Below, piece after piece: positions 9,797 to 40,189 of a stretch of DNA of 64,000 bases. Origin of the DNA: Convolutriloba macropyga. Lineage: Eukaryota. The notes beneath the pieces are model-generated. The model was given only the letters and a program-made list of their open reading frames with translations, did not search any database and was not told the origin of the DNA. The translations under genes and the position numbers were made by a program. Numbering within the stretch: the first letter of the stretch is position 1; every line of letters starts with the position of its first letter. Location: positions 18,104,001 to 18,168,000 of the forward strand of contig NC_134473.1 of assembly GCF_964194025.1 (NCBI RefSeq), given 5' to 3'.

Positions 9797-10098
9797 GGTT
9801 TAGATGTTATAGCGTTTAAGTTTTTATTACTCCCCTTCAAATCCAGAATTAAAACTAGTTTTTTAATAATCAGTCGTTATGGATTAACTATATTTTTTAT
9901 TCCAACTTCTGATGTAGTCAATGAAAAGCCACGACAAAAATGTGCTTCTATGAAATAGCGATTTTGTTTTTTTTTCAGAAAAAAGTCGTTAGAAATACAT
10001 TGAATATAATTACTCTAAATGGCCAAGTATTAAGTACTTTTGTCGGTTGGCGCTTTGTTGCAATTTTTGAAATAATTCTTGTTCCTTTTATGAGTCAT

Positions 10099-15041: not shown

Positions 15042-15112
15042 GGTACGGTGGCGCAATGGTAGAAGAGGCGACAAGTAAACAGGAGGTCATTGGTTCGAGT
15101 CCCATACCCAGA
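15042..15112 (+). ncRNA. tRNA-like Pol III cassette inside the non-autonomous element
   Basis: GGTACGGTGGCGCAATGGTAG...GGAGGTCATTGGTTCGAGTCCC has A box TGGCGCAATGG and B box GGTTCGAGTCC at tRNA spacing. The anticodon and acceptor arms do not pair. Confidence 0.7.
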
Positions 15113-18100: not shown

Positions 18101-18853
18101 TCAGCTTAAAAAGTGTGCGGTTGCAGTTTTAAGGTACCTGCTTCCAGCAAATTTAAAGCAAGTCGGCTTTAAAAAGCAAGTTTTGTCCCAATTTTGGTCC
18201 CAAAATAAGTCGAATTTTGACAAATTTAGCAAAAATTCAAGTCTAAAAACTCTAATCGAACAATACAGCAACCCTCCTCTATGTTTAGAGATAAAATTAT
18301 TAACACTACGGTTAACAATGTGATCAAATTTCAGCAAAATTGACAAAAAATAGGTCAAATATACCGAAAATTGTATAAAAACGGCTGATATACGTCTAAT
18401 ATTCACAAAACTTTAAACCTCGATAACTCCCTATAAAAAACGTAAATTAAAAAAATCTACCCTGGACGGGCTTTTTAATGATACCACTCACAACTCTCTA
18501 CGATGATTATATCGATCGGCCAAAAGTGTCTGAACAAAAAAACCCATTTGAGTATATATTTCCTCCCCCACTAAAGTGGGTCGGAACAACAAAATCAACT
18601 GAAAGTTCCAGTTTTTAAATCAATACTCTATAAAATCTTTCAAGTGAACATTTGACTATATAAATTACTGTCATTTATAAGTTTTTTTATTGGTACCTTG
18701 TTGTTCTAGGTATATATTGTCAATAATTAGGATTTAAAACCAAGGACTTAGTTTTTCAATAGTATTTTTGTCCAATCGACTGTTTATATTATGGCAACCC
18801 ATCTTAAGATCACATAAGAACTGTCCTCTAGAGGGATACACATTTTTCTATTT

Positions 18854-19075
18854 CCCGGGCCGACGTGTACACCCGTATTCCACCGTTATTAAGCGAGAAT
18901 AAGGGTGTAAAGCCAATTCCACTCTTAATTAGCAGGAATAAGAGTGTAAGAGTGTAATTTTGAAAAAATTACACTTTAATGTACACTCTTTACACTCTTT
19001 AGTACACCCTTATTACACTTTCAAAAATACACTATAATTACACTCTTTATTCTACTCTTTTTTACACTCTTGAGC
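18854..19075. repeat. Left TIR and subterminal repeats
   Basis: Clustered direct and inverted tacact(c)/(g)agtgta motifs and ttccaccgtta. The same motifs occur at 38240-38500 and 39611-39993. Confidence 0.8.
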
Positions 19076-19084
19076 GAATTATGT

Positions 19085-21500
19085 GAAGCAAATGTAGAAC
19101 TTAATGAAAACCTTTTGTTAAGAGCATTTCGAAAAAGACAAGTTAGAAATTCTATTTTAGCCCGTTTTGTTGACCTGATACTGAGTTTTTTGAAATTGTG
19201 CGGAAATAAAAGCCAATAGTTTGATTTGTATACAGAATTTTTATGAAATCTCCAAATAGGTGAAGAAAGTGTCGAACTTCATTAAAAACGTTTGTTAACA
19301 ACTTTTTGAAAAAGACGAATTGAGAAATCTATATTAGCCCGTTTGGTTGCTCTGATACTAAATTTTTTGAGTTTGTGTGGAAATAAAAGCCAATAGTTTG
19401 ATTTGTATACAGAATTTTTATGAAATCTCCAAATAGGTGAAGAAAATGTCGAACTTCATTAAAAACGTTTGTTAACAACTTTTTGAAAAAGACGAATTGA
19501 GAAGTCTATAATAGCCCATTTGGTTGCCCTGATGTTAAATTTTTTGAAGTTGTGTAGAAAAAAAAGCCAATAGTTTGATTTGTATAATGAATTTTTATGA
19601 AATCTCCAATTAGATGAAGAAAATGTCAAATCATTAAAAACGTTTAACAACTTTTTGAAAAAGACGAATTGAGAAATCTATATTAGCCCGTTTTGTTGCC
19701 CTGATACTGAACTTTTTGAGATTGTGTAGAAATAAAAGCCAATAGATTGATTTGTATACAGAATTTTTATGAAATCTCCAATTAGGTGAACAAAATGTCG
19801 AACTTCATTAAAACCGTTTGTTAACAACTTTCTGAAAAAGACGAAATGAGAAGTCTATATTAGCCCGTTTGGTTGCCCTGATACTAAATTTTTTGAAATT
19901 GTGTAGAAATAAAAGCCAATAGTTTTGAATTGTATGATCAATTTTTGAGAAATCTCCAATTAGATGAAGAAAATGTCGAATTTCATTAAAAACGTTTGTT
20001 AACAACTTTTTGAAAAAGACCAATTGAGAAGTCTATATTAGCCCGTTTTGTTGCCCTGATACTGAACGTTTTGAGATTGGGTAGAAATAAAAGCCAATAG
20101 TTTGATTTGTATACAGAATTTTTATGAAATCTCCAAATAGGTGAAGAAAATGTCAAACTTCATTAAAAACGTTTGTTAACAACTTTTTGAAAAAGGCGAA
20201 TTGATAAATCTTTATTAGCCCGTTTTGTTGCCGCGATAATGCACGTTTAAAATTTGTTGAAATAAAAGCCAATCGTTTGATTTGTATACAGAATTTTTAT
20301 GAAATCTCCAATTAGGTGAAGAAAATATCGAATTTCATTAAAAACGTTTGTTAATTACTTTTTGAAAAAGACAAGTTGAGAAATCTATATTGGTCCGTTT
20401 TGTTGCCCCGATAATGCATTTTTTTAAATTATGTTGAAATAAAAGCCAATAGTTTGATATGTATACGGAATTTTAATGAAACCTCCAATTAGATGAAGAA
20501 AATGTAGAACTTCTTTAAAAACCTTTGTTAACAACTTTTTGAAAAAGACGAGTTAAGAAGCCTATGTTAGCCCGCTTTGTTGCCCCGATAATACAATTTT
20601 TGAAATTGTGTAGAAATAAAAGCCAATAGTTTGATTTGTATACAGAACTTTAATAAAATATCCAATTAGATGAAGAAAATGTAGAACTTCTTTAAAAACC
20701 TTTGTTAACAAAATTTGAAAAAGACGAGTTAAGAAGCCTATGTTAGCCCGCTTTGTTGCCCCGATAATACATTTTTTGAAATTGTGTAGAAATAAAAGCC
20801 AATAGTTTGATTTGTATACAGAACTTTAATGAAATCTCCAATTAGATGAAGAAAATGTAGAACTTCTTTAAAAACGTTTGTTAACAACTTTTTGAAAAAG
20901 ACGAAATGAGAAGTCTATATTAGCCCGTTTGGTTGCCCTGATACTAAATTTTTTGAAATTGTGTAGAAATAAAAGCCAATAGTTTGATTTGCATAAAGAA
21001 TTTTAATGAAAACACCAATTAGGTGAGGAAAATGTCGAACATCATTAAAAACGTTTGTTAATAACTTTTTAAAGAAGACGAGTTGGGACGTCTATGTTAG
21101 CTCGTTTTGTTTCCGTGACAAAGTACTTTAAATTCTTTACGAGTTTGTGTAGCATTAAATGCCAATACTTTGATTTGTTAACAAAATTTTAATAAACCAC
21201 CGAATTAGGTGAAGAAAATGTCGAACTTCATGAAAAACCTATGTAAATAACTTTTTGAAGAAGACGAGTTAGAAGACCTATGCTAGCCCATTTTGCTGTC
21301 GTGATAACGTATTTTTTGAGTTTGTATAGAAGTAACTGCGAAAACTTTATTTAATTACAAAATTTCAATGAATCGTCGAATTAGGTGAAAAAAATGTTGA
21401 ACTTCATGAAAAACGTTTGTTAATAACTTTTTGAAGAAGACGAGTTAGAAAATGTATAATAGCTTATTTTGTTGCCTTGATATTGTACTTTCTGAAACTA
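19085..21500. repeat. ~177-bp tandem satellite (~13 copies) inside the transposon
   Basis: Anchor gaaataaaagccaatag recurs at 19203, 19380, 19557, 19729, 19906 and onward. A/T-tract rich; the last copies are more diverged. Confidence 0.92.
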
Positions 21501-22816
21501 TTTAGAACCGTTTTTGAAACTCTTTACATCTATCCAAAATTTTAAGAAAACTGTCGATTTTTGGTCAAAAGTTAGTCATTTTTGTCAAACTTGGCTTAAA
21601 TTATCTCAAATTTTAGGTGCAAACATACATGTTTTAGTATCAAAATAAACTAGAGTTTACGCTTCCAACAAACATATATTTATCTTTGTAAAGTATTGCC
21701 AAACAAGAAAATGCGAGAGCAATGTAGAGACCGAAATCAGGGTCGATTTTCGCAAAATTTTCGAGTTTTCAAAGTTGTTTGGTTAAATAAATTTTTTGTT
21801 ACACTTCGTATTTGAAAGTATATTATATCATTTTCTTGCCCATTTAATCCTCTTTACGAATATATAAGGGTTGAAAAGTCTCGGTTTTATTTCATAGCCT
21901 AATTTTTCGATTTCCCAAATTTTGCTGAAAATAAGCCAAATCCAGCAAAAATCTCAAAAATCGAGTTTTGATTCATTTATTTTATTAACTGTTTTTAACC
22001 CTAGGTTGAACCCCCAGTACATGTTGATTCCAAAACATATTCATTTTTTAATTTTGGTTCAGTAGATTTCGAGATAAAAGCCTTTCTCGGACGCGTACCA
22101 GGCCCCCCCCCCCTTAGTCCCAGCTCTGGAAAAACCCACCCGCCAAATTTAAACCTTTTTTTAATACGTTCCCGTTCTAATTTTGAAATCCCACTTGCCA
22201 TGTTAGATTCCATGAAGATTTTAGATGTTAGATTCCAATTTTAGAAGTGCTCTCTTCATGGTTGTTGGCTGTGAAGCAGGGTATGAAGTTTTCGTTTGGT
22301 GTGTTGCCTCACGGTAACGTGACATGCTCATCGTGAGTCAATACAAGTAAAGACCCCGGCACCTGCCTCCTCTCACTTGACTACCATGAATAGAGCATTT
22401 GAAATTGCGCAACGTATACGAAAGTTCCAAAAGCTCACACAGTAAGCCGGAAATAATGTAATTAGTTCCAATAAGTCGATTTCACGGCAAAGACGCAACG
22501 GATTGTTCGGAGGATCGACAGGACGGATCGATGACGGGACGGAGGACCGAGAACAGAGGATGAGTTGCAATGACGGGACGGGGTCGCGATCAGGGTGGCG
22601 GCGGCCCATCGCTCCGTTTCGTTGGGACCCATACAAAAGTTATATCGTTGGGAAGCTCTCGTCAAGGTGAATTTGATGGGCTATATGGCAGGACCCATTA
22701 TGGGCATACTATAATATCTATACTATTATACTACTGGTTGGAAGTTTCTAATGTGATGTATTAGTCGCTAAGCGTTTATATTTTGTGTATCGTTTTTAGA
22801 TATTGCTGTTGAAAAC

Positions 22817-23467
22817 ATGGACCGTAAACGAATCGGCAGACCTTATGCTTCCGCTAATGCACCTCCCAAAAAAGCCCTCAAGCCGCTTTTCGCAGATGAC
22901 CAGGTCAATGGCAGGGTAACAAAATTGCAACCCAACGGGAGGAACGCTGAGTTCATCTTTAACAATTTCGTTGGTGAAAGTGTGCATACTGCAATAGTAG
23001 GGGACTCAATATTTGATAGTATTTGTATAAGGAACTGCGTCACTTATTCATTGTCAGGCGGATAAGTCGAACAATTTCATCTGCTACTCGATACCCTCTC
23101 TGTATATAGGAACGTCATCTTAGCTGTCGGTGGCAACAATTTGTCAAATTGGAGTAAACCCGGAGAGGATCCATCAGTTGTTGTTGATAAACTGAGAATT
23201 TTGTACAATGCCATCAGGGGCCTTGAAAATCGCCCAAAAGTAATAGTGTGCTCTGTATTGAAAAGGAATTGCAGCCATTGGAACATCCAACGATTCAATG
23301 CGGTGCTAAGGCACTCGCAGCTGCCCTTCTTTAAACTTCATCAAGAAGTTTAAAAAAGCAATTTGTTTCTGAGTGACGGTGTCCACCTTAATTTGAAAGG
23401 TAGAAAAGCATTGCCTTGTGCAATGAATAAAGTTGTGAGAGAACATCAGCAGCACCAATTTGATTGA
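22817..23467 (+). pseudogene. SGNH/GDSL hydrolase (esterase-like), two in-frame TAA stops
   Basis: One frame of 217 codons with block I IVGDS, block II SLSGG, block III AVGGNN and block V LSDGVH. Stops at 23063-23065 and 23351-23353. Preceded by an acceptor-like tttttag ending at 22799. Confidence 0.85.
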
Positions 23468-23689
23468 CTCTTGTTTTCGTTGTTTGTGTTCGTGCAGCAA
23501 TTTTATTCAATTTGTTTTATTAAATCTTTTGTGTTTGTTGATAACTAAGTACTAGTACAATTCGCAATTTCTTGTATATACTCATCAGGGTGAATTCATC
23601 GTCTTACCTCCATTTTTTTTCGAGCATCTGTTAATTTAATCGCTTGCTGAAAACCTGAAAAATGACATAATTTTGATGTGGCTTTAACA

Positions 23690-25010
23690 TAGGATTCTAT
23701 CCGCTTCACCAGGTACAATAGATTCGAATTTTAGGCTTGTGTTTGCGGGTGTCTTTGCCTGCATCGCTATGTCCACTCAGCGAATTCTATCCGCTTCGCC
23801 CTTTACAAACAGAATCATTAATTAGGCTGGTGTTTGCGGGTGTTTCTGCCTGCATCGTTATGTGCTCTCAGCGGATTTTATCAGCATCGCCCGGTACAAA
23901 GATTCAAATTTTAGGCTCGTGTTTGCGGGTGTCTCTGCCTGCATCGCTATGTCCACTCAGCGGATTTTATCTGCTTCACCCGTTACAAACAGAATCATTA
24001 ATTAGGCTTGTGTTTGCGGGTGTTTCTGCCTGCATCGTGATGTGCTCTCAGCGGATCTTATCCGCTTCGCCCGGTACAAAGATTCAAATTTTAGGCTCGT
24101 GTTTGCGGGTGTCTCTGCATGCATCGCTATGTCCAATCAGCGGATTCTATCCGCTTCGCCCGTTACAAACAGAATCTTAATTTAGGCTTGTGTCTGCGGG
24201 TGTTTAGGCCTGCATCGTTATGTCCTCTCAGCGGATTTTATCCGCTTCGCCCGGTACAAAGATTCAAATTTTAGGCTCGCGTTTGCGGGTGTCTCTGCCT
24301 GCATCGCTATGTCCACTCAGCGGATTCTATCCGCTTCGCCCGCTACAAACAGAATCATTAATTAGGCTCGTGTTTGCGGGTGTTTCTGCCTGCATCGTTA
24401 TGTGCTCTCAGCGGATTTTATCCGCATCGCCCGGTACAAAGATTCAAATTTTAGGCTGGTGTTTGCGGGTGTTTCTGCCTGCATCGTTATGTGCTCTCAG
24501 CGGATTTTATCCACTTCGCCCGGTACAAAGATTCAAATTTTAGGCTCGTGTTTGCGGGTGTCTCTGCCTGCATTGCTATGTCCACTCAGCGGATTCTATC
24601 CGCTTCGCCCGTTACAAACAGAATCTTTAATTAGGCTTGTGTTTGCGGTTGTTTCGGCCTGCATCGTTATGTGCTCTCAGCGGATTTTATCAGCTTCATC
24701 CGGTACAGAGATTCAAATTTTAGGCTCGTGTTTGCGGGTGTCTCTGCCTGCATCGCTATGTCCACTCAGCGGATTCTATCCGCTTCGCCCGTTACAAACA
24801 GAATCATTAATTAGGCTCGTGTTTGTGGTTGTTTCTGCCTGCATCGCTATGTGCTCTCAGCGGATTTTATCCGCTTCGCCCGGTACAAAGATTCAAATTT
24901 TAGGTTCGTGTTTGCGGGTGTTTCTGTCTTCATCGCTATGTCTACTCGGCCGATTTTATCCGCTGCGCGCAATAAAAATAGATTCCATAATAAGGCTTGA
25001 GTTTGCGGTT
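23690..25010. repeat. Satellite of alternating 91- and 89-bp monomers (180-bp dimer), ~14-15 monomers
   Basis: Anchor ttaggct.gtgtttgcggg at 23731, 23822, 23911, 24002, 24091 and onward. Monomers alternate between 'ttacaaacagaatcattaa' and 'ggtacaaagattcaaatt' types. Confidence 0.93.
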
Positions 25011-25220
25011 GATTTTGCTTTTTGAAAATTAAATTTTTCTTTCGAGGTTTTCTCCTGTTGACATTAAATTAAGTGAGAATTAGTGAATACTTGATTTAAT
25101 TTAGTTGACTTTTAGTCGTTGAATTTAAATGACTTTGTTACAATGTCTAAAGTTTGTAACAAGATTTATTGTTAATGAGACTCTTTAAGCTAATGGTCTA
25201 ATTTACTATTAATTTCAGAG

Positions 25221-26781
25221 ATGCCTTTGAAAATTGAGTTTGTGTTCCTTACGGAAGAGTGCCAAGTGTTAAAATTGAGTTTGTTTGATCCTCGATGGCC
25301 CAAAACCCTGCAAATAAATGAGCGTATGAAACTAAATGATGGCGATAAAATATCGCTAATGATTGATGGCTCTGAGGTTGATTGCGTTCTACTGAAGCAT
25401 GGTCCACCAGGTGCGATGGCCGTAGAGTTCAGAAAAAAACAAGAAATCTATGGTGCGTTTGCGGATCAGTGTAGTGGTAATTTGGACGTCACCCTACGTA
25501 AGGGAGCGCGCTGGGCTGGCAGTAGTTTGACACCTGTTGAGAGTTTTGGACCTGAAAGTCCAAGGGTTATGGTTAGATCTCTTGCTTTCGTTTTCTTTAT
25601 TTTTATGAACGGTGTAAAAATAAAATATTTCGTTTTGCAACGTGTCAAGACTTTGTTCATCAAGTTTTGTTGTTCTATTTTGCCTACATAAGAAATTTTG
25701 TTGCTTTGTTTGATCTCTATCCAATGTCGATTACGTTGCCCTGTTTAGAAATGCTCAAATCATGAAAATATTGTGGAAGTCCTAAATGAAGACAAACGTA
25801 TGTTCAGTGAACTTCTTCGAGTCTATAAGAAAACAGTACAGGATTGCAATAAAAAATTGGAAAGCCAGCTACACAACTTTTCAAAGAGATTGTGAGTATA
25901 TGATTTTTCACTGGTTTTGTACAAGTTCTGGGTCATAGGCACTTCACAAATGTTCGACTTTAATCTTCAAATATGCAGTTCGAATTATTTGGTTGTTGAG
26001 ATCTGGAAATTTAATTTGATGTGGGTTGTTTTCTGGATGAAATCAATCTCTTATAGAGTTTTTTCACTTTTAGAAAGAACTCAAGAAATTAGATGACTCT
26101 GTTGACGAGGAGACCAGTGAAGTGCTACCTAGTTTCTATGAAGACGCTGATATTGATAATCTTCCTGTACCCTCAACTCCCGATGAGTTCGGAAGAGTGC
26201 TAAGAACAGCACTTTGGGGAGAAACGGGTCTTGAGCGAGAAATAATTTCTCCAACGAGAGAAATCGAGGTGCGGAAACCCGCCTCTCCGAAAAGAACTAA
26301 GCTTTTCAAAGGTATTTACAAGTACTGTTTTTCAAGAAACTTAAAATTTTCAATATGACTTCCCTCAAAAAATTTACAGACCCTAAACGCTCATCACGGC
26401 AAAAAGTGGTTACGGAACTTTTAGCAGCTTTCGAATTTTTTGAAAAATTGGATTTTATTGGTTTTCTCTGTCTTCCCCAAAACGGAGAGCTGAAATTGTT
26501 AAGGTTTTTCGTATGTTCAGGGGCTTGTGAAGAAGCTTTTCCCCCCTCGTCTGTGGCCTGAAGCTTACAACGACGCCCGTTCGTCTGCGAATAGATCGGG
26601 CATGGATGCAGTGCGGTACAGAAAAAGGAAATCTGACCCATTCTGGTGCGCACAAATGAAAGAAAAGGCAATGTCTAAGAAAAACAAACGGACAAAAAGG
26701 CGACCGAATGAAGAGTCTGACGGTCAAAAGTTAAGCAATGCACAAATTGATGAGAGTGATTCTGAAGGAAATGTTGAATAG
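25221..26781 (+). pseudogene. Four-exon BEN-domain-like gene A (N-terminal beta-rich domain, coiled coil, BEN-like C-terminus)
   Basis: Approximate exons 25221-25571, 25749-25891, 26074-26311 and 26521-26781, with GT-AG borders. C-terminal EFGRVLRTALWG...SPKRTKLFK/GLVKKLFPPRLWPEAYNDARSSANRSGMDAVRYRKR fits the BEN helical pattern. Two splice junctions are out of phase by 1 nt. Confidence 0.6.
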
Positions 26782-27467
26782 AGCCCTTAAAATCTTTGTT
26801 GCAATTTTCTATTTGATTTAATGACTTGATATTTTGTGCTGTTATTAGGCTTTGATTAATAGTCGCGAACCAATAGCTGAGGCTGTTATAGTCCTTCTCT
26901 TGGTTTTTTTTGCGTGCGTGACGTTATTTTTCACTCTTAGGTGAGCGAGTATTTTTGGTCACACATGATTTTCCTCACTCTCACAAATGACCTCCTCGTT
27001 ATTAAATTGACTTTTCTTTACTTTAAAGAGATAAGGTAAAGTGAGTGTTTGAGACTCTACTTGAAGGTTACTATAAAACAGCTAATAACAGGAGCAGCTA
27101 ATAAATTATACAGATATATAATTAAAATTTATTATCTCAGTCCTTTGTCGCGCGGCTGTTTTCTGGCAATCTGCCAGCTATGTTTCGTTTTCCTTTGTTT
27201 AATGAATTTTGGATTGACTCTAAATGCGGAAAACATTACTATTCCATCAAATGGCTACCTCAGATTTTTAGATTGATTATAATTGACTCATTGTTCGTTT
27301 TTTCTTCAAACTGTTAGTATAATGCTTCAATTTCAGCAATTTGACACTGAAATTAAAGCGGTTAAAACGTTAAAATTTAGATTGATTCTAAACATTTTGA
27401 AATTTTTGGTTTCTCTGTTTCGTTGCAAATACAGTCGAACGTAGTAAAATAATTGAAAAGTTTTTAG

Positions 27468-29121
27468 ATCGTTGAAAATGAAACCACCTTCAGGAACTGA
27501 TCGCAAGAGAAAAGCAGCAACCTATTTGATTCGGAGGCCGAAAGAGAGGACAGTGTCCGATCCAGTATTTTAGCTAATAACACGGCGTGGCTATTTGTTG
27601 ACAATAAAGAGCTGATTTTGATTACTGTAAGCAGCTTTAAATGGCCGCCCAAGACTAAGACATCTGAAATGCTAAGTCTAATCGAAGGTGATAGTTTCGA
27701 CTTGCGATTCAAAGATGGAAATGTGCCCTGTCGTTTGTTGGTAAAAGGAAACATGAAATAAGTTGAAAAACTCATAAACAGCTATCAGCAGGAGCTAGAT
27801 GCAGGTAAGCGGCCGTCTGAGTTGCGAAAAACAGTGCTTGCTAATCCTAAGGCACCTGTTGTGGATGAGGTTAATTTCTTGTGTCGAGGACGTGCACCTG
27901 GGATGAACAGTACCGTAGTCACTCTTGGTAAACCAGCAGGCGTCGAAAAGTCAAAAGCTTCCAATTCTGCGTTATCTCAGCCAGTCATTTCAGCAAAGAA
28001 GAAGAACAATACGGTAAAATGTGACTTTTTTTAACTAATTACAAATGGCATCTTAGAGATTGTTAAAGGCCTCTTTGAATTTGTCGAAAACTATGAGAGA
28101 CTGGTTAACGGTAGAAAGGCATACTGATAAATGTCGTTGCTGTGCTTTGAAATATTTGCTTTTTTTAGCCTGAGCCCGATCTTTCTCAACCTTCTACTTC
28201 TGCGACCACCAGCTCAAGCACATTTCCAACCATTGCGGACAACGCAGTCGATTGTGGGCCAAATTGCTCTCTTCTCCAGGAATATCTAGATAGGCATGTT
28301 GTTGAGATGAATAATTGGATGAAAGCATTTGAGGAGCTGAAGAAAGCGGACGAAAAAAGGCGGGCAAACATATGCGCAAGAATTGACGCTAAGGTGCCCC
28401 ATCGCTCCTTTAATTTTTCTACTTTTTACGAAATGAACCTACTTGCTAGGCTTTTCAAAAGATATCAAATTCTCAAACATCATAGAGGCTTAAGTTCTTG
28501 TGAATAAATTTCACAGTGTTTGTTACCTCTAAATGTTTAGGCTACCCAATTGAAAGAAATTCGCCTCTTGGATATTCATGGGTTCCAAAGTATCGATGAC
28601 TATCCTTCGCGGAGCTCAGGTATCACAGCAGTCATGCACAGCGGTGAAGACCTTATGACGGTTCACGCTGGCTCAGATGTCGGAAAGCTGGGTAGAGCAT
28701 TGTTTGAGAAGCTGTTTCCGGAAAATGAGCGTGGAAATTACATTCTCGCACCAAAAAGGCATGAAGCTGATCGTAGACTTGAAGCTCCCAGGGAAATTCT
28801 CGACAAGTTTACGAGTATGTTTTTAAAATTGGACATGAAGCCTTCCTTTCCATTAGCAATTAAAAAAATCCCGCTTGCGCGTTATTGGCATTTTAAAAAG
28901 ATTCCTCTTGCGTGTTAAAATTTTAAACCTGCTAAAACCAGCACTTCAAGACAGGTAATCGGCATAGAAGTTAAAACGAGATTTTCTTCTTGCTTTCATA
29001 GGTTGTGCAGCTGAAATACCCTGACACTCCTGGGCTTGCTTTTGAGCAAGTCGGAAAATCGGCAAATCAATACGGCAAGGATTGCCGAGGCCGACATTCC
29101 AACGTAGAAGAAAATGAGTGA
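27468..29121 (+). pseudogene. Multi-exon BEN-domain-like gene B, paralogue of gene A
   Basis: N-terminal TAWLFVDNKELILITVSSFKWPPK...LIEGDSFDLRFKDGNVPCRLLVKG aligns to gene A (RWPK...LNDGDKISLMIDGSEVDCVLLKHG). Coiled coil near 28290-28392. C-terminal DVGKLGRALFEKLFPENERGNYIL...EILDKFT/VVQLKYPDTPGLAFEQVGKSANQYGKDCRGR is BEN-like. Contains in-frame stops. Confidence 0.65.
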
Positions 29122-29831
29122 ATATTCTGCCTGAAACGCGAGAATTCTGCCTGAAAATGTCATTTTTCATTAAGGAGTGCTGTTTTATTTTTAATTGATC
29201 TCGAACGAACTTGTAGCAATTATTGTAAACGCGTTGATCTCTATGCAAAAATTTTGCTTGAACATTTTGATTTTTTGAGTGATTTTTACGCCCTTGACTT
29301 TCTGCGTTTAAAGTGATCATAATTTCTCTCATTTAAAATTTCAAGTTCTTAAATTCAATTGCCGGCAATTTAGTGCTGAAAGTCAAATGGTAAGCGCGCC
29401 AAAATTGATGTCAATTTTTCACTTTATATCTTAATAGCGCTATTTATTAACCTCTAATGATCAGGCTGCAATTAGTAACTGATTAGAGCTCCCACTAGTT
29501 GTTTGAGAGCAATTTTCCCGACGTTAGTCGGTTATGTTTAGTGAACTTGAACTAACCTTTCGTAACTTTCCTATATAGTCTCCCTAGGTTAGTCGGTTAT
29601 GTTTTGTGAACTTGAACTAACTTTCTGTAACTTTCTTAGATCCAGTTTGTTTACTTAGTTTAAACATTCGCTGCTTTGCCAGCGTAAGAAAATTTGTATT
29701 GTCTTTTGATCCTGAATTAAACAGTTTATTAAAACAATGATTACGTTTCCATAAAAGAACTTGTTTCAAGTTTTTCGAAATTATCTCTATGACGGGCATA
29801 ACGTAACCACTGGTAAAATTTTTCAAGTGAT

Positions 29832-31046
29832 ATGATTACATGCGATGATTTAGTGATTGCGGATGGACAAGTTGTGCGTCAAGTTTTAACCAGTTTTAAT
29901 GTCTGTCCTCAAACGATGCTGCCCCTGAACAGTTTGGAACGGTTCGAGAGCCGCATGAAATTCAACAAACAGCTTTCAAAGGCTTATTTTTCACTAAAAG
30001 AACTATATGAGCTTTGTATTGCATCAGGATTTAAAATCTTGCCTGACAACTATGGCGGCTATGGCCTCTTCAACAATACGGGAAAAGTATTAAAACCTTC
30101 ATTGCAACCCCCTTAGACCTTTTCCTGTGGGACCAATTGAAACTGTTGCTCTTGAACTGCAAAATGAGATGTCCGATTTGTCTGTAATGCGTGGCGAGCG
30201 TGAGCAGTGTGAAGTAGTACTGCTTGGCCCCATTCGTTTTGCAAATCACTCTTGTTCGCCAAATACGTAATTTTTCTTAGGATACACAAGTTCTTTTCTC
30301 CCCACAACAAGTGCGTGTTTCCTCAAGTAATAGACTCCATAGGGCTTGGTGAAGAAATAACTGTGAGTTACGGATCAAACTACTTCAAAGACGGTAGTCT
30401 TAAATGTAGGTGCCCACATAAGGAAAAGCACATGCCGCTAAACCGAGAAAATTTAGAATCAACGACTCCTCGATTCCAAAGTCCTGATGTCCCCACTCAG
30501 CTGACATTTTCGTCAAGTACCACAAGTGCAATCTTAGGATCTGGTGAGAGTAGTGCCAGCTACACTGCAAGTCAGTCTAGCATTGGTACACCGACTGATT
30601 GTGAACTTTCTGCAAAGAGAAAATTTAGAAATCAACGGAAAAGGCGGGTCAAAAGAAGAATCTTAGAAGGTTCGAGTCGCGAAATCAGAACCTTCATACA
30701 CCAGATAGATGCCACTCGCTCTTTCGAAGTTGAAACTGAGGAAACAGATACACAAGTGAGTTCGCAATGTTCTGCTGACGATTAGCTTGAAACCGAAGCC
30801 TCTTTTGAACCCGAACCTGAATTTGACCTCCCAATTGGAGAAGAATCTGAGGTGACCTCCAATGATTATGACGAAGATGATCTTGATGACAGTGATGGCA
30901 CTGATGTGGCAGAAAGAAGTTTCCAGTTTTCTTCGAATCCGTTAACGTGTAACTCGAATGTAACTGTTCATAATGCGTCAATGGGTTTATTTGCAGTTGC
31001 TGCTCGACATTGTCTACCCGACGAAGCTCTGTTCGATCTGCTGAAA
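29832..31046 (+). pseudogene. Duplicated, truncated copy of the SET domain, linker and transposase N-terminus
   Basis: Same sequence as 31742-32956. ORFs 30252-30785 and 30852-31064 share one frame, separated only by a TAG that is TAC in the second copy. Confidence 0.85.
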
Positions 31047-31741
31047 CGCGAGAATTCTGCCTAAAAATGTCGTTTTTCATTAAGGAGTGCTGTTTTATTT
31101 TTAATTGATCTTGAACGAACTTGTACCAATTATTGTAAACGCGTTGATCTCTATGCAAAAATTTTGCTTGAACATTTTGATTTTTTGAGTGATTTTTACG
31201 CCCTTGACTTTCTGCGTTTAAAGTGATCATAATTTCTCTCATTTAAAATTTCAAGTTCTTAAATTCAATTGCCGGCAATTTAGTGCTGAAAGTCAAATGG
31301 TAAGCGCGCCAAAATTGATGTCAATTTTTCACTTTATATCTTAATAGCGCTATTTATTAACCTCTAATGATCAGGCTGCAATTAGTAACTGATTAGAGCT
31401 CCCACTAGTTGTTTGAGAGCAATTTTCCCGACGTTAGTCGGTTATGTTTAGTGAACTTGAACTAACCTTTCGTAACTTTCCTATATAGTCTCCCTAGGTT
31501 AGTCGGTTATGTTTTGTGAACTTGAACTAACTTTCTGTAACTTTCTTAGATCCAGTTTGTTTACTTAGTTTAAACATTCGCTGCTTTGCCAGCGTAAGAA
31601 AATTTGTATTGTCTTTTGATCCTGAATTAAACAGTTTATTAAAACAATGATTACGTTTCCATAAAAGAACTTGTTTCAAGTTTTTCGAAATTATCTCTAT
31701 GACGGGCATAACGTAACCACTGGTAAAATTTTTCAAGTGAT

Positions 31742-32340
31742 ATGATTACATCCGATGATTTAGTGATTGCGGATGGACAAGTTGTGCGTCAAGTTTTAAC
31801 CAGTTTTAATGTCTGTCCTCAAACGATGCTGCCCCTGAACAGCTTGGAACGGTTCGAGAGCCGCATGAAATTCGACAAACAGCTTTCAAAGGCTTATTTT
31901 TCACTAAAAGAACTATATGAGCTTTGTATTGCATCAGGATTTAAAATCTTGCCCGACAACTATGGCGGCTATGGCCTCTTCAGCAATACGGGAAAGGTAT
32001 TAAAACCTTCATTGCAACCCCCTTAGACCTTTTCCTGTGGGACCAATTGAAACTGTTCCTCTTGAACTGCAAAATGAGATGTCCGATTTGTCTGTAATGC
32101 GTGGCGAGCGTGAGCAGGGTGAAGTAGTACTGCTTGGCCCCATTCGTTTTGCAAATCACTCTTGTTCGCCAAATACGTAATTTTTCTTAGGATACACAAG
32201 TTCTTTTCTCCCCCACAACAAGTGCGTGTTTCCTCAAGTAAAAGACTCCATAGGGCTTGGTGAAGAAATAACTGTGAGTTACGGATCAAACTACTTCAAA
32301 GACGGTAGTCTTAAATGTAGGTGCCCACATAAGGAAAAGC
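31742..32340 (+). pseudogene. Suv4-20/Set9-like (KMT5B/C family) SET histone methyltransferase domain
   Basis: Reading across one frameshift (~32020) and one TAA (32178-32180) gives SGFKILP...GPIETVPLELQNEMSDLSVMRGEREQGEVVLLGPIRFANHSCSPNT*F...CVFPQVKDSIGLGEEITVSYGSNYFKDGSLKCRC. This is collinear with Suv4-20 SGFEILP...DFSVM...WLGPAAFINHDCRPNCKF...GEEI.C.YG..FF...CEC. Confidence 0.88.
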
Positions 32341-32815
32341 ACATGCCGCTAAACCGAGAAAATTTACAACCAACGACTCCTCGATTCCAAAGTCCTGATG
32401 TCCCCACTCAGCTGACATTTTCGTCAAGTACCACAAGTGCAATCTTAGGATCTGGTGAGAGTAGTGCCAGCTACACTGCAAGTCAGTCTAGCATTGGTAC
32501 ACCGACTGATTGTGAACTTTCTGCAAAGAGAAAATTTAGAAATCAACGGAAAAGGCGGGTCAAAAGAAGAATCTTAGAAGGTTCGAGTCGCGAAATCAGA
32601 ACCTTCATACACCAGATAGATGCCATTCGCTCTTTCGAAGTTGAAACTGAGGAAACAGATACACAAGTGAGTTCGCAATGTTCTGCTGACGATTACCTTG
32701 AAACCGAAGCCTCTTTTGAACCCGAACCTGAATTTGACCTCCCAATTGGAGAAGAATCTGAGGTGACCTCAATGATTATGACGAAGATGATCTTGATGAC
32801 AGTGATGGCACTGAT

Positions 32816-34851
32816 GTGGCAGAAAGAAGTTTCCAGTTTTCTTCGAATCCGTTAACGTGTAACTCGAATGTAACTGTTCATAATGCGTCAATGGGTTTAT
32901 TTGCAGTTGCTGCTCGACATTGTCTACCCGACGAAGCTCTGTTCGATCTGCTGAAATGGCAAAAAATTATTCATCCCCACGAAAATGTGCCTACTCCCAA
33001 TTTTATGAAAAGTGAAACCAAGAAATTAACGGATCTCTACGTAAAGGACACAGAAAAAAATGCCAGCGGAGAAGTTATTTTTCTTAACTTTGCAGAAAAA
33101 CTAAAGGAGAAAGTAGAAAAGTACATCAACGAAATTATGCATTACGCTAACCCAGAAACGGAAAGGGATCTCAAGCTAACAAGTCTTTTCGATGACCAGA
33201 CAATCAACGTGAAACTAATTTTAAACATAAACGGAGTTGAAGTTAGAAAGTCAAGTGATTGCTCAGCCTACCTTGTTTGGGTTGCTCTTGCTGATCTTCC
33301 GCCAAAATTAAGAGCTTCATTTGACAACATCTTTCTTTGCTCATTGTGGTACGGAAAAGGAAAATATTTCTGGGACCCTATATTTGAACACTACAGATCT
33401 GAACTTGCAAAACCCCAGAACATTTGTTACAAAGGGAGACTATACAAAATCAGTTTTACAACAGTTTTTCTCGTGGTAGACCTTGTGTGCAGGCATGATG
33501 TTTTGAATATGAAAAAATTCAATGGTTATTACGGCTGCGGTCTTTGTACCATGCGAGGGTTTCAAGGATTTCCTGGAACTCACTCTTATCCAAACAGTAA
33601 ATGCTTCTCAATGCGGAACCCTGCTGAGCATCATATTCTTGTTATGCAGGCTGAAAGCGGAAGTGTTGAGGAAAGAAAGTCGAGGAAGGAGAAAGACCCA
33701 GAGGTGGACACACTAGGCGTTAAAGGACGCTATAAACTGTTTGACATCATCCCAAATCTTCCCTTGACGTGTCCAGTAGACACGATGCATCAGTGCCTTA
33801 AAGGTGTGGCCAGTGACGTCATAAATTTTTTCGCCGAGCAACTAGGTTTGACTGAACTAAGCGCAATCGACAATGCAACTTGTCAAGTAGTTCTTCCCAA
33901 CGAATTCAAAAGGTCAATTAGGTCTCTCAGTTCAATTTACATATCAAAGCAAATGCATTAAAAACTTTCTTGCTCTATTTTTCACCCTTAATTTTTCGAA
34001 AGTTTTCTCAGAGTTCTCCTGCACATGATGCGAACATGCAATATCTCAACTACCTGGTGTTTTCACTGCGGTCAATGTACGAGAATACCTCAAATGCAAA
34101 CTTATGTGGACATCTTCTGGAGGCATTCTGCTATAAGATGTCGTTTCGTTATCCTCTAAAGAAATTTGACTCTATCAACTTCCATTTGCTGCGACACCTG
34201 GCCTGGCAGTGCAAAACATTTGGCCAGTTATGGACTACTTCAGCTCCGATGTTTGAAAATGCCAACATTCATCTGATTAAAACTCTGACGGGGAGTGTCA
34301 ATACCTGCAGTTTGATCGTTAGTCGTTATATACAAAACCGACAACTTGAAAGCTTCGAAGTGAAAGATGACCATCTAAAAGCTTATATTGAAAATCTGAG
34401 GAGGAGAACAACTGGTATCACGGAGGATTTGTGCTTAGAAAGAAACAATTTTTATTATGAAACCCAAAAAAAGTTTCCTGAAGCCCGTTTGTTCTGTAGG
34501 TATCGAGGGCGCTTTTATCTTGATAGTCAGAATTATACAAAAACAAACGCCAACAGTTTTGTTGCTATCGATGAGAACGGTGAAACCATAGTTGGCCAGA
34601 TTTTGCTTTTCAAAGAGCAAGATTCGGAGTTGCAGTGTTTTGTACAGCTGTACGAAAAATTTGTAGTTGATCTGAGGTCAACGGAATTTGCCAGACATTC
34701 AAACTCTTTTGAACCTCTCGCTTACCGTGTTGCAAAGTCAACTGAAGTCCAGGCTTTCAAACTAGATGCAATTAAAAACAAGCTCATAAAGCTTGCTTTC
34801 CTGGGGGATTTATATTTCATCAACGTGTTAAAACACTTTGAGCATGATTAG
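32816..34851 (+). pseudogene. CMC/EnSpm-family DDE transposase, one frameshift near 33930-33965
   Basis: Motifs LILNINGVEVRKSS (first catalytic D replaced by N at 33230-33232), LADLPPKLR, LCSLWYG, VVDLVCRHDVLNMKKFNGYYGCGLC, PVDTMHQCLKGV and NFHLLRHL...FGQLWTTSAPMFENAN are all characteristic of animal EnSpm-type transposases. Confidence 0.92.
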
Positions 34852-34964
34852 TACTGTTAGATTTTTCTTACTTGTTTTAAACTAGATGAAATTAAAAACA
34901 AGTTTATAAAGATTGCTTTCCTGGGTGATTTATATTTCACCAGCATTTTGAAACACTTTGATTA

Positions 34965-37900
34965 TTACGAATAAGTAATTTTAAAAATAGTCTTTTTCAT
35001 AGGGTCATAGACTTGTCCAAATCGAACTAAACTGGGTATGGAGTATACCATGGGTACCTAGAGTCTTAAACAAAAAGAATTTTTGCTATAGCTTGCCTAG
35101 GAAAAAAGTTAGTTTTTCATACGGAAATTTGCGACTTTCGCGATTAGCGAATTTTAAAAATAGGTCTTTTTATCGGGTCAAGAAGTTGTTCAAATCAAAC
35201 AAAACTCGGTATGGAGTATCACCAGTGTAATTTAGAGTATCGCTCCGTATGTTAATTGTTAGACAAATTTTTTTGTTGCTCTTGCTTTTCTGAATTTCTT
35301 GTCCTAATTTTTCAGTTGTTATTATGCAGCAAACACAAATTATTGTAACCAGAACTGGAAGAGTATTCTGTAAGAGGCCCGGTTTGTCAACAGCAGAAAA
35401 CAGAGAAGCACGAGTTGAAAATGAAGAAATTTTAAAATTGGAAGTCAATGAACTCAAAAAGAAAGTCGAAGCTTTAAAAGAGAGAGTCGAAAAACATGAG
35501 AAGGCGATCATTGAGTTGGTAGACTTGACTAATGACGATTTCTTTGAAACTACTATTTCGGTAAATTCGGATGATTTAATTGAGCTTCCAAATGGTATCT
35601 GAGAAATTAAATTGGTCAATTGTAGTTATTCTGTTTAGCCCATTGTTCGTGCAGAGTAGATTGAATTTATGGCTTTACTTGTATTAAAAATTCAATCTTA
35701 CCTTAAAACAAGCATTGTTTAATAATTGATTTCGTTAATCAATCATGTTTCTTGGTAGTTTCCTGGTCTGAAAACTTCTGCGGTTAACTTAAATCTACGG
35801 TTTGAGTGTTGGACAAAAGGAATTTTTGCTCTAGCTTGCCTAGGAAAAAAGTTAGTTTTTCATACGGAAACTTGCTATTATTTTCGAATATTTAATTTTG
35901 AAATAGTTTTTTTCATCTGGTCAAGCAGTTGTTCAAATCAAACAAAACTCGGTGTGGAGTACCACCAGTGTAATGAGAGTGTAAAACAAAAAGAATTTTT
36001 ACTATACCATGCCTAGGAAATAAATTGGGTTTTCATACGGAAATTTGCTATCATTTCGAATAATTTTGCAATTATTATTTTAAAAATAGTTCTATTTCGT
36101 TGTGTCCAGGATTTGTTCAAATCTAACCAAAATCTGTATGGAGTATCCCATGTATACATAGAGTGTAAAACAGAAAGGATTTTTGCAATAGCTTGCCTAG
36201 GAAAAAGTTAGTTTTTCATACGGAATTTCGCGATTAGCGAATTTTAAAAATAGGTCTTTTTTATCGAGTCAAGAAGTTGTTAAAATCAAACCAAATCCGG
36301 TATGGATTATCCCCTGTGAAGTTAAAGCCTAGTATCTAAAAAGTCTTTGCTATAGGTTGCCTACGAAAAAAGTCGCGAGTTTTAAATATAGTTATCTTTT
36401 ATTGGGGCAAGAAGTTGTCCAAATCGAACCAAACGGGGTTTAGAGTTTACCATGGTTACCTAGAGTCTAAAACAGAAAAAATTTTTGCTATAGCTTGCCT
36501 CGGAAAAAACTTAGCTTTTCATACGGAAATTTGCCGTTATTTCGAATATTCAATTTTAAATAATTTTGAAAAATAGATCTCTTTGATTAGGTCATAGTTT
36601 TGTCCAAATCGAACCAAACTTGGTGTGAAGTATCCCCTGTGTAGTTAGAGCGTAAAACAAAAAAGAATTTTTAGTATAGCTTGCCTACCAAAAAGTTGGG
36701 TTTTCAAACGGAAATTTGCGAATTTCGCAAATAACGAATTTTAAGAACAGGTCTTTTTCATTGGATCAAGGACTTGTCCAAATCGTATTAAACTCGGTAC
36801 GGAGTATCTCCTGTGAACCCAGAATCTAAAACAAAAAGAGTCTTTGCTATAGCTTGTCTAGGAAAAAGTTGCTTTTTCATACGGAAATTTGCGATTAATT
36901 CGAATAGTTAATTTTAAATAATTTTGAAAAATAGGTCTTTTTGATTAGGTCTTAGAGTTGTCCAAAGTGAACCAAACTCGGCATGGAGTATTCCATGGGT
37001 ACCTAGATTCTAAAACAAAACAATTTTGCTATGGCTTGCCTGGGAAACAAGTTAGTTTTTCATACGGTAATTTGGAACTTTAAATATAGGTCTTTTTCAT
37101 CGGATCAAGGAGTTGTTCAAAGTAAACCAAACTCGGTATGGAGTATCCCATTTATACCTAGGGTGTAAAAGAGAAAAAATTTTTGCTACAGCTTGACTAG
37201 GAAGAAAGTTAGTTTTTCATACGGAAATTTGCGATTATTTCAAATAAGTAATTTTAATAATGAGTCTTTTTGAGAGGGTCATAGAGTTGTCCAAATCAAA
37301 TCAAACGGGGTATGGAGTATACGATGGGTACCTAGAGTCTAAAACAAAAAAAAATTGCTATAGCTTGCCTAGGAAAAAAGTTGCTTTTCCATACGGAAAT
37401 TTGCCATTAATTCGAATATTTAATTTTAAATAATTTTGAAAAATAGGTCTTTTTGATTAGGTCTTAGAGTTGTCCAAAAAGAACCAAACTCGGTATGGAG
37501 TATCCCATGGGTATCTATATGGTAAAACGAAAAGAATTTTTGGTATAGCGTGCCTAGGAAAAAAGTTAGTTTTTCATACGTAAGTTTGCGATTATTTCAA
37601 ATAAGTAATTTTAAAAATAGGTCTTTTTGATTGGGTCATAGAGTTGTTCAACTCGACCCAAACTTGGTATGATCTATTCCCTTCAAAATAATTTTGAAAA
37701 ATAGGTCTTTTTGATTAGGTCTTGTCCAAAGTGATCCAAACTCGGTATGGAGTATCCAATGGGTATCTAGATGGTAAAACAAAAAGAGTTTTCGGTATAG
37801 CTTGCTCAGGAAAAAAGTTAGTTTTTCATAAGGAAATTTGCGAATTTCGCGATTAGCGAATTTTAACTATAGTTATCTTTTATTGGGCCAAGAAGTTGTT

Positions 37901-39200
37901 CAAATCGTACCAAACTTGCTATGGAGTATCCCCTGTATAGTTATATTGTAACGCATTAAGAATTTTTGCTATTGTTTGTCTTATGTTTTTGTCATTGTTT
38001 CCGACAGTTCTTAGTTATTTTATTTTTTGCATTTATTTTGTTTTGGAGATACAGTTTAAGCCTGGTTTTTCGCCAGTGCTTTGCTCAAAAATCGAAACAC
38101 ACCCAAACCATAAGGGAAAAACCTCAAGAATTGATTTTTTCAAAAATCAAATTGAGATATTTCCGACACTACTGTAGCTAAATATATTTATAGACTCATT
38201 TTGTGCATCTGATCAGACTACCGCGTGTTTTTGCGACGGTTTACGGGCCGAAGATTTTGCCGAAAAATAACGGGGAAAAGAGTTTAAAGAGTGTATAAAT
38301 AATTTTCTTATTGTTTTTTTGTTAGTGCCCCCTTATTAAGGGTAGAATTTCATGTTAAAGTTTAATTTACGGGTGTAAATGATAGAAAAAGAGTGTAAAC
38401 AAGAGTGTAACAAAAAGTTTAAACGGTGTAAAAAAGATGGTAATAATAAATTTTAACGGTGGAATAAAGAGTGTAAAAATAAGTTTTAACAGTGTAATCC
38501 AAAAGAATTTTTGGTATAGCGTGCCTAGGAAAAAAGTTAGTTTTTCATACGTAAGTTTGCGATTACTTCAAATAAGTAATTTTAAAAATAGGTCTTTTTG
38601 ATTGGGTCATAGAGTTGTTCAACTCGAACCAAACTTGGTATGATCTATTCCCTGTGTTCATAGAGTCTATAACAAAAGAATTTTTGCTATAGCTTGCCTA
38701 GGAAAAAAGTTAGTTTTTCGTACGTTACTTTCCGATTAATTCGTATAGTTAATTTTAAATAATTTTGAAAAATAGGTCTTTTTGATTAGGTCTTGTCCAA
38801 AGTGAACCAAACTCGGTATGGAGTATCCAATGGGTATCTAGATGGTAAAACAAAAAGAGTTTTCGGTATAGCTTGCCTAGGAAAAAAGTTAGTTTTTCAT
38901 AAGGAAATTTGCGAATTTCGCGATTAGCGAATTTTAACTATAGTTATCTTTTATTGGGCCAAGAAGTTGTTCAAATCGTACCAAACTTGCTATGGAGTAT
39001 CCCCTGTATAGTTATATTGTAACGCATTAAGAATTTTTGCTATTGCTTGTCTGGGAAAAAAGATAGTTTTTCATACGGAAATTTGCGAAATTCGCGATTA
39101 GCGAATTTTAACTATAGTTATCTTTTATTGGTCCAAGAAGCTGTTCAAATAGAACCAAACTCGGAATGGACTATGCCTAGGGTATATAGAATCTAGGCAA
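34965..39200. repeat. Diverged satellite, mostly ~160-186-bp units, in the right part of the transposon (interrupted by the small ORF and an end-module copy)
   Basis: Anchor gcttgcctaggaaaaaagttagtttttcatacgg at 35091, 35834, 36007, 36191, 36355, 36493, 36679, 36852, 37034, 37191, 37363, 37548 and onward. Second motif aaccaaactcggtatggagtat. Confidence 0.9.
35324..35602 (+). CDS. Small intact ORF, 92 aa: basic TRTGR motif, coiled coil, acidic tail
   Basis: ATG to TGA intact. Heptad pattern in LKLEVNELKKKVEALKERVEKHEKAIIEL. Unique sequence interrupting the right satellite, preceded by acceptor-like tttttcag. Confidence 0.5.
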   Translation: MQQTQIIVTRTGRVFCKRPGLSTAENREARVENEEILKLEVNELKKKVEALKERVEKHEKAIIELVDLTNDDFFETTISVNSDDLIELPNGI

Positions 39201-39610
39201 AAAAAAATTCCGTTAAAGCTTGCTTACTTAAAAAGTTAGTTCTTTTGTTTATATTATTTTATTTAATATATTATGTAATTTATTATGGTTTTGTTATTGT
39301 TTCCGACTGTTCTTAGCTATTTTATTGTTTGTCTTTATTTTGTTTTGGAGATAGAGTTTAGGCCTGGTTTTTTGGCCAGTGCTTTGCTCAAAAATCTCTT
39401 ACAGTTGAATGTTCATAACTCCGCCGTAGCCGGTCCCCAGCCCGGTTGAGATAAGGAGGAGGGAAACACACCCAAATCATAGTGGAAAAATCTCAAGAGT
39501 TGATTTTTTTAAATCAATTTGAGATATTTCCCACACTACTGTAGCTATAAATATATTTATTGACTCATTTAGTGCATCTGATTAGACTACCCCGTGCTTT
39601 CGAGACGGCT

Positions 39611-39993
39611 TACGATCCGAGGATTTTCCCCAAAAATAACGGGGAAAAGAGTGTAAAGAGTGTAAAAAAAATCTTTTTACACCGTTAGTGCTACCCTTAA
39701 TAAGAGTGGAAAAAGTGTAATGCAAAAGTGTAATTATAAGAAGAAGAGTGGAAGAGTGTAATAAAAAGATTCAATGGTGTAAAATAAGGGTGTAAAAATA
39801 AGTTAAAGGTGTAATTAAAAAGAGTGTAACCGTAAGAAATTACACCGTTATTCCACCGTTAAATCTTTTTTTACAATCTTAAATTACACTTTTTCCACCC
39901 TTATTAAGGGTAGCACTAACGGTGAAAAAAAATTTTTTTTACACTCTTTACACTCTTTTCCCCGTTATTTTTGGGGAAAATCCTCGGCCCGGG
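39611..39993. repeat. Terminal foldback module (~110-bp inverted arms) forming the right end
   Basis: tacgatccgaggattttccccaaaaataacggggaaaagagtgtaaag... pairs with ...ctttacactcttttccccgttatttttggggaaaatcctcggcccggg. Confidence 0.85.
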
Positions 39994-40189
39994 TTTGAAA
40001 AAGTTTTGCTCAATTCGTACTCTGGATTAAGACATTCCTAAACTGCCTTCCGTACTTATATTACGTTTGAAAATCTGAGTTTTACTGCAAAGTGCTGTTT
40101 TGCCATTAAAAAAATAAGTTCAACGTTAGTGACACATATAGGAAAACGTTGTCAGCCATCATCACTGAAGCTGCCTAAACACTAGCATT

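Follow-up and report, generated by a model that had tools for sequence, protein, structure and literature searches.

The window analysed here, a stretch of 64,000 nucleotides from Convolutriloba macropyga (contig NC_134473.1, positions 18,104,001 to 18,168,000; coordinates without a prefix are those of the window), contains at 18854-39993 an element of ~21 kb that is one copy of a multi-copy family. The layout of this family is fixed: a terminus, satellite 1, a gene for an SGNH hydrolase, satellite 2, the BEN-like gene A, its paralogue gene B, a gene joining a SET domain to a transposase, satellite 3 and a second terminus. We read the element as one copy, no longer active, of a giant DNA transposon that moves by cut and paste and belongs to the CMC group, related to EnSpm, Mirage and Chapaev, and give this reading, together with the mechanism proposed for it below, a probability of about 0.88.

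Boundaries and conserved layout of the element

The element is delimited by a 12-bp terminal inverted repeat with one mismatch, CCCGGGCCGACG on the left (18854..18865, + strand) and CCCGGGCCGAGG on the right (39982..39993, - strand), so that the right edge reads as the reverse complement of CCCGGGCCGAGG. TT is present just outside both ends (18852..18853 and 39994..39995), as a putative 2-bp target-site duplication. The same pattern was found at a small element in the window and at the compact relative L010, giving flanking repeats of 2 bp in three elements: TT/TT (window element), GA/GA (13314-15500) and TA/TA (L010). The 10-mer CCCGGGCCGA occurs at 18854 on the + strand and at 39984-39993 on the - strand; allowing at most one mismatch, it had 7 matches in the window against 0.41 expected by chance.

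Other copies indicated the same limits. Related copies were taken from the public assembly ERZ25071359, and all relatives come from unannotated assemblies. Homology to L005 and L009 begins exactly at the left terminus (L005:4028 and position 5474 of L009), in both cases behind a different flank. On the right, the ends of L001 and L002 matched that of the window element: in L001, the colinear subterminal region with its hairpin stops at CCTCCCCCCGGG (9934-9945) and is followed by a different flank, and L002 ends with TCTCGACCCGGG (18412-18423), again before a different flank. Single-copy-depth contigs from four public runs tracked the left flank to 18853 and diverged from 18854. Summed word depth was ~1000-2000 over the genes and 20-40 over the flank, which fits tens of copies, such depth not being a copy number. 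The proposal of an earlier reading made from the letters alone (hereafter the sequence-only reading) that terminal inverted repeats and TT flanks enclose the element was therefore upheld by the 12-bp repeat, the TT/TT pair and the exact starts within other flanks.

The gene order between the termini was conserved in close and in diverged copies. L005 contains the terminus, satellite 1, the SGNH gene, satellite 2, gene A, gene B and the SET gene at 85-95% nucleotide identity, and a third copy, L006/L007, has the same order, also at 85-95% nucleotide identity (L006). A subfamily represented by L009, with 60-65% amino acid identity, has the terminus, satellite 1, the SGNH gene, genes A and B and a SET-transposase open reading frame (ORF) of 951 codons. 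At 33-46% amino acid identity, L008 still has the SGNH gene, two BEN-like genes and the SET-transposase in that order, and L002 and L003 keep gene A, gene B and the SET-transposase. Transposase copies lacking these neighbours had been named as evidence that would speak against a single element; the neighbours were found to be kept in L005, L006, L009 and L008. Further copies in the public assembly, with the same gene order in other flanks, thus agreed with a multi-copy family of large DNA transposons. The comparison of copies proposed at the outset bore out the gene order, the terminus and the different flanks, but 2-bp duplications could be read from three elements only.

Comparison of synonymous (pS) and nonsynonymous (pN) differences showed that synonymous sites are saturated between lineages (pS 0.72-0.88). 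pN was 0.14-0.16 for the SET part, 0.19-0.20 for the transposase, 0.22 for the SGNH gene, 0.27 for gene A (pS 0.84) and 0.27 for gene B (pS 0.86); the linker between SET and transposase reached 0.39-0.43. With pS saturated, pN values of 0.14-0.27 indicated that all four genes were kept by purifying selection. Together with the order conserved in diverged lineages, this supported the earlier assignment of the SET-transposase, the BEN-like genes, the SGNH gene and the satellites to the element.

These data also bear on the alternative of a chance mosaic, in which the termini come from two small elements unrelated to each other and enclose host genes or fragments that were captured without function. 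In favour of it, the right end of the element includes a foldback of ~375 bp with the appearance of a small element, fragments of related ends are dispersed nearby, and 13314-15500 is a distinct small element that shares the terminus. However, L001 has this foldback at its right end too, genes in the same order are found between these termini within other flanks and in lineages with as little as 33-46% protein identity, and pN is far below pS in all genes. We consider such a mosaic very improbable and retain the reading of one transposon copy.

The small element at 13314-15500 is non-autonomous, 2.2 kb long and flanked by GA/GA, and it shares the terminus (CCCGGGTCGAGG / CCTCGGCCCGGG). It differs in its subterminal motifs, ACGCTAA and TACATAA, and has tandem repeats of its own, with periods of 98-346 bp and 287 bp. 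In L005, a shortened form (~440 bp) sits 0.9 kb upstream of the giant copy. In the left flank of the window element, the word depth of a segment of ~240 bp (18368-18605) was extreme in each of the four runs, with values of up to >1 million; this segment is probably a short repeat of very high abundance that has no relation to the element.

Coding capacity and decay of the window copy

The SET-transposase gene (31742..34851, + strand) is intronless and has decayed in the window copy. In intact relatives it is a single ORF of 951-1014 amino acids with a SET domain related to SUV4-20/KMT5 and a CMC-type DDE transposase; such ORFs were found in P0002, P0017, P0167 (1014 amino acids), P0143 (989 amino acids) and L009 (951 amino acids). 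The ten best Protein Data Bank matches of the SET part were all KMT5B/C (E 2e-6 to 2e-5). Pfam SET was matched in relatives with E values of 1e-8 to 1e-11, the match covering only the C-terminal half of the model. The GxG and NHSC motifs, the catalytic Tyr and the post-SET Cys/His motifs were kept in three lineages that are 31-40% identical. Pfam searches with the ORFs of the window itself gave no useful match, and a word-based search with the SET part returned no annotated relatives. The KMT5B/C matches and the single ORFs of the relatives were in agreement with the proposed fusion of a Suv4-20-like SET domain to the transposase.

Alignment of the transposase part (P0001, L002, P0019 and P0023) revealed the shared blocks NTDG, xDLxC, YGCxLC, INFHLLRH and FESAN. 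The D, D, E triad is present with CxxC and HxxxH, the window copy having N for the first D; this combination has been given as the motifs of EnSpm, Mirage, Chapaev and Transib (PMC12730594). DUF1258 was matched in relatives above the cut-off of 33.1 (P0023, 50.5 bits; L010, 52.5 bits; P0129, 46 bits), and Transposase_21 was matched below its cut-off (20-27 bits vs 28.6). The motifs and the Pfam matches of the relatives supported a CMC-type transposase, with termini that start CCCGGG... and not CACTA or CA..TG.

The activity of the SET domain is a separate question. The element may be real and its SET domain not a histone writer; it could be a module that binds histone tails or other proteins, or its methylation target could be the transposase or a host factor, and the chromatin-toolkit reading would then fail. 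The SET domain resembles KMT5 modestly (E ~1e-6), with the Pfam match confined to half of the SET model, and the primate SET-transposase protein SETMAR, also called Metnase, provides a precedent: it is reported to be an atypical lysine methyltransferase (PMC8704517) and to be regulated by automethylation (PMC2566874). Against this, the cofactor-binding and catalytic motifs (GxG, NHSC and Tyr) are kept across three deep lineages, and pN of the SET part is as low as that of the transposase core, which fits a working enzyme and does not indicate its substrate. We regard a SET domain without a histone-writing role as somewhat unlikely.

Genes A and B are located upstream of the SET-transposase gene. 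Gene A (25221..26781, + strand) is predicted to encode, in four exons (~25221-25565, 25749-25891, ~26077-26313 and ~26524-26781), a protein with a beta-barrel, a coiled coil and a BEN-like domain, and its predicted introns are conserved. Gene B (27501..29115, + strand) is a paralogue with the same four-exon layout and has an in-frame stop at 27759-27761. The GT-AG introns of gene A have matching positions in L006, L009 and L003, and for both genes intron positions are shared between copies of only 55-65% identity. A profile of exon 3 matched 72 proteins, including full-length homologues of ~300 residues, and linked genes A and B to P0110 (E 3e-4) and P0090 (E 4e-6), in agreement with the alignment.

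The AlphaFold model of the homologue P0110 contained a confident small N-terminal beta-barrel, a long coiled coil and a C-terminal helical domain (predicted local distance difference test score, pLDDT, >90). Searching with this C-terminal domain in VIA-align, the 12 best matches were all BEN domains (Z 6.5-8.3 over 81-103 residues; the next match had a Z of 5.1). In Foldseek, BEN domains made up the best 4 hits and 10 of the 16 best, all with E values of 0.02 or more. Protein-language-model features had a value of 0.92 with BEN clusters, and those of exon 3 alone gave no BEN signal. These comparisons with a predicted structure support a BEN fold for the C-terminal domain of the gene A/B family. 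For the N-terminal barrel, a Tudor-like assignment from the model of window exon 1 was considered; its best unbiased match was the JMJD2C Tudor domain with Z 4.9, below a meaningful level, and the assignment was rejected as unproven. Distant homologues of genes A and B do not retain the Trp of the WP motif of the family, so that a conserved aromatic cage is not evident.

The SGNH/GDSL-type hydrolase gene (22817..23470, + strand) is a pseudogene in the window copy, with two in-frame stops. Intact relatives have 213-215 amino acids and retain the GDS, G, GxN and DxxH blocks; VGDSI, SLSGG, GGNNL and DGVHL recur in 15 relatives, the most distant of them at 41% identity. Pfam Lipase_GDSL_2 was matched in 13 of these 15 (E 2e-5 to 1e-2), in all cases below the gathering score of 32.9. 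The four catalytic blocks and the position of the gene are kept in relatives, consistent with the earlier claim that an SGNH hydrolase belongs to the element.

The sequence-only reading had counted five co-oriented genes. Four distinct co-oriented genes were found, and the supposed fifth was a tandem duplicate of 1.9 kb: its first copy (29126..31046, + strand) is 99% identical to 31037-32956. The duplicated segment consists of the spacer before the SET gene plus the SET-coding and linker part, and is absent from L004 and L006. Short segments of the spacers between genes A and B (26873-27266) and between gene B and the SET gene (29237-29630) had a word depth ~100-fold higher than the rest of the element, so that they resemble a far more abundant genomic repeat.

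The window copy is dead, with disabling changes in every gene. In addition to the two stops of the SGNH gene, exon 2 of gene A has 2 extra bases relative to family contigs, which causes a frameshift, and the stop in gene B stands where L006 has Lys. In the SET part, a run of C near 32020 is one base too long, and relatives have Gln in place of the TAA at 32178. In the transposase, the first catalytic Asp has changed to Asn, and a frame break near 33960 is accompanied by the loss of about a dozen residues.

The right flank has also been rearranged. An inverted duplication that spans the right end (37686-39052 vs 40776-42370) is 98.5% identical, and 40183-48984 is a tandem array of 1.4-1.56-kb units that are 91-98% alike. 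Each unit contains an inverted copy, 76-81% identical, of the right-terminal kilobase of the element, and degenerate termini TCCGGGCCGA are found in this array at 43507, 46478 and 48042.

Several observations weigh against the transposon reading as a whole or in part. Both ends are known only for the window element and two small relatives, and the 2-bp duplication amounts to three cases. The termini are of the CCCGGG type (CCCGGGCCGAGG; CCCGAG... in L010), unlike the CA/CACTA starts of most CMC elements, and an aberrant right junction is possible because the right flank is a rearranged array of the element's own end. The SGNH gene was not seen in the examined parts of L002 and L003. The contigs of the four public runs behave like genomic DNA and yielded no sign of splicing or expression. 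Pfam BEN (PF10523) gave no match at E values up to 0.1-1, either with the window exons or with full-length homologues, and the exon-3 profile had no BEN match in the Protein Data Bank; the BEN assignment thus comes from the model of the homologue P0110 and not from the spliced protein of the window copy. Of the earlier claim that there are two BEN-like genes, the BEN fold stood, on P0110, and a Pfam BEN match did not follow.

Satellites, subterminal regions and conserved non-coding parts

Clusters of (A/G)GTGTAA motifs were found at both ends of the element in both orientations, as the earlier claim of shared subterminal repeats had it. The left subterminal region (18866..19076) has GTGTAA-type motifs in either orientation and matches L009:5474-5777 at 85.6% identity. 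The right one (39175..39981) combines GTGTAA motifs with a hairpin of ~375 bp (39615-39993) and is colinear with the right end of L001. The motif is lineage-specific and the terminus is kept: GAGTGTAA is present in the window element and in L001, GAGCGGTTT in L002 and others in the small element. L002:17000-18423, from a lineage with 40% identity, has its own subterminal GAGCGGTTT / AAACCGCTC arrays next to a similar terminus, CCCGGGTCGAGA. The palindromic subterminal arrays of L002 yielded spurious sub-threshold matches to microRNA families in Rfam.

Arrays were detected by Tandem Repeats Finder and autocorrelation. Satellite 1 (19077..21482) is made of ~13.6 copies of a 177-bp unit and is also present in L005, L006, L009 and L008 at 73-88% identity. 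Satellite 2 (23692..24968) has a 180-bp unit with a sub-period of ~90 bp and 48% GC, and was also found in L004/L005/L006. Satellite 3 (~34960..39174), of a 174-bp family, has two interruptions, one at 35239-35803 and one at 37981-38503; arrays in L001 and L003 match it at 77-79% identity, and in the copy L006/L007 it extends over 10 kb or more with no called gene inside. The three arrays noted earlier were thus all found, unrelated in sequence and with periods of 174-180 bp. Their description as nucleosome-length holds for these periods, but is so far a numerical coincidence only.

Two segments of these regions differ in their presence among copies. The first, 35239-35803 inside satellite 3, is absent from the examined parts of L006 and L007 and contains an ORF of 92 codons (35324-35602) with a predicted coiled coil and weak Prefoldin-like Pfam matches only. 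The second, 22095-22634 (~540 bp, upstream of the SGNH gene), is common to the diverged L009 and missing from the close L005 and L006, a pattern that points to a deletion in L005/L006 or to exchange between lineages.

A conserved non-coding block of ~460 bp (21644..22100) lies between satellite 1 and the SGNH gene. Over five copies, including L008 (L009:8177-8640, L008:8790-9267), mean column identity was 89%; unlike this block, introns and spacers of these lineages do not align. It had no shared ORF and no Rfam match, and RNAalifold found no covariation support over 21630-22110.

A sub-threshold twister-P1-like motif was found in the right subterminal region (39412..39467, + strand), with 33.8 bits against RF03160, whose gathering score is 67.2. 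The homologous site in L001 (L001:9253-9308, + strand) scored 38.4 bits, also below 67.2. The core of ~58 nt has one difference between the two subfamilies, and its flanks are 74-82% identical. The core stretches of the motif are present, P3 is absent and P1 is weak, as judged from two sequences only. The tandem units right of the element lack exactly this twister-like piece.

Satellites and conserved blocks may alternatively have arisen neutrally, through slippage and unequal exchange, and have been homogenised as copies recombined with each other; they would then not serve as platforms for binding. This would be in line with the great variation in array length (~4 kb for satellite 3 here vs at least 10 kb in L007), the other periods of the small element and the lack of covariation in the conserved block. 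It is less easily reconciled with satellites 1 and 3 and the block at 21644-22100, which are 73-89% identical where synonymous sites are saturated and introns unalignable, or with the period of 174-180 bp shared by three unrelated arrays. We consider a neutral origin possible, if doubtful, and treat the arrays as candidate working parts of the transposon.

Proposed mechanism and relation to known systems

We propose the following mechanism for active copies. The transposase part would recognise the 12-bp termini and cut and paste the element. The BEN-fold proteins, probably paired via their coiled coil, would bind the lineage-specific subterminal repeats and perhaps the arrays; we predict them as subterminal-repeat binders because the repeats change between lineages next to a conserved terminus, which would match the division of tasks between TnpD and TnpA of plant En/Spm. 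Tethered to the element through the transposase, the SET domain would methylate a lysine on nearby nucleosomes, with lysine 20 of histone H4 (H4K20) as the best guess, or on a partner protein. The mark written in this way could recruit host factors for break repair after excision, or set the chromatin of the element itself. Control of its own chromatin state, or the choice and modification of insertion sites, as put forward in the sequence-only reading, would be a hypothetical role of such active copies. The window copy cannot perform these roles because it has decayed.

A stronger version of this model would make active members a self-contained chromatin module, in which the SET domain writes H4K20 methylation and paired BEN proteins read both the subterminal repeats and the 174-180-bp arrays. 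With such a module, the transposon could form or direct a chromatin domain of its own or, following excision, attract break-repair factors dependent on H4K20 methylation, and the conserved block and the twister-like RNA motif would be further cis parts. In this complete form we judge the model unlikely.

The smallest relative provides a possible view of how the family was assembled. L010, which comes from a sample labelled as metagenome, is a compact element of 7.9 kb (also found as L011) with inverted termini of 36 bp that start CCCGAG and with TA/TA flanks. It encodes one intronless BEN-like protein (349 amino acids) and a DUF1258 transposase of 746 amino acids without a SET domain. From this content, a BEN-like gene plus a transposase may be the older core, to which the SET fusion, a second BEN gene, the SGNH gene and the arrays would have been added later; L010 thus suggests how the large form could have arisen stepwise. 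An accessory role for the BEN genes, as we infer it, is likewise backed by L010, where a BEN-like gene and the transposase are the only genes.

The design described here, a histone-methyltransferase-like domain built into the transposase itself and accompanied by two BEN-fold partners, an esterase and long arrays, has been kept by selection in deeply separated lineages. Should its SET domain prove active, the family would allow a direct test of whether a mobile element can place histone marks at its own termini or where it has been excised. A literature search, which did not cover Repbase Reports, found no SUV4-20-like SET domain fused to a transposon's own transposase, no BEN-like partners of CMC elements and no giant SET transposons.

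The element resembles the CMC superfamily (EnSpm/CACTA, Mirage, Chapaev) in its short target duplication and its subterminal repeats, and its relatives match DUF1258 and, below the cut-off, Transposase_21; the duplication of 2 bp, in three cases, falls within the 2-5 bp range of CMC elements. It differs in its CCCGGG... termini in place of CA..TG or CACTA, in its size of 21 to >30 kb, and in having a transposase fused to SET, BEN-like accessory genes and an SGNH gene. Plant En/Spm encodes the transposase TnpD and TnpA, the latter binding subterminal repeats. The element described here is similar in combining a transposase with one or more separate upstream accessory genes and with arrays of short subterminal motifs that run in both orientations. 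The accessory proteins, however, are unrelated to TnpA in sequence and, as predicted binders, have a BEN fold. The C-terminal domain of P0110 superposes on the BEN proteins BEND3, BEND6, BANP, Insensitive, Bsg25A and NACC1 (Z 6.5-8.3); in contrast to these, the transposon-encoded proteins have no Pfam BEN match and carry a new N-terminal small beta-barrel and a coiled coil.

To our knowledge, transposons with epigenetic enzymes of their own are rare, the clearest cases being the fungal TET/JBP elements and the SET genes of oomycete Harbinger/MuDR elements. In PMC12730594, which cites Repbase Reports 2014, SET genes are placed in HarbingerS and MuDR of Phytophthora, and TET/JBP in fungal KDZ, Plavaka, EnSpm and other transposons. 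These are alike in being DNA transposons that carry an enzyme for epigenetic marks; they belong to other superfamilies or hosts, and the same paper describes no transposase fusion, BEN-like partners, SGNH gene or satellites. The closest parallel in protein architecture is primate SETMAR/Metnase, which joins a SET lysine methyltransferase and a DDE transposase in one protein, and whose SET domain is reported as a methyltransferase for lysine 36 of histone H3 (PMC4593633, PMC2847698). SETMAR is a host gene that captured the dead transposase of an Hsmar1 mariner, whereas the fusion described here is encoded by the mobile element, with a KMT5-like SET domain and a CMC-type transposase. With an active SET domain, it would be a natural counterpart to the host-made SETMAR fusion.

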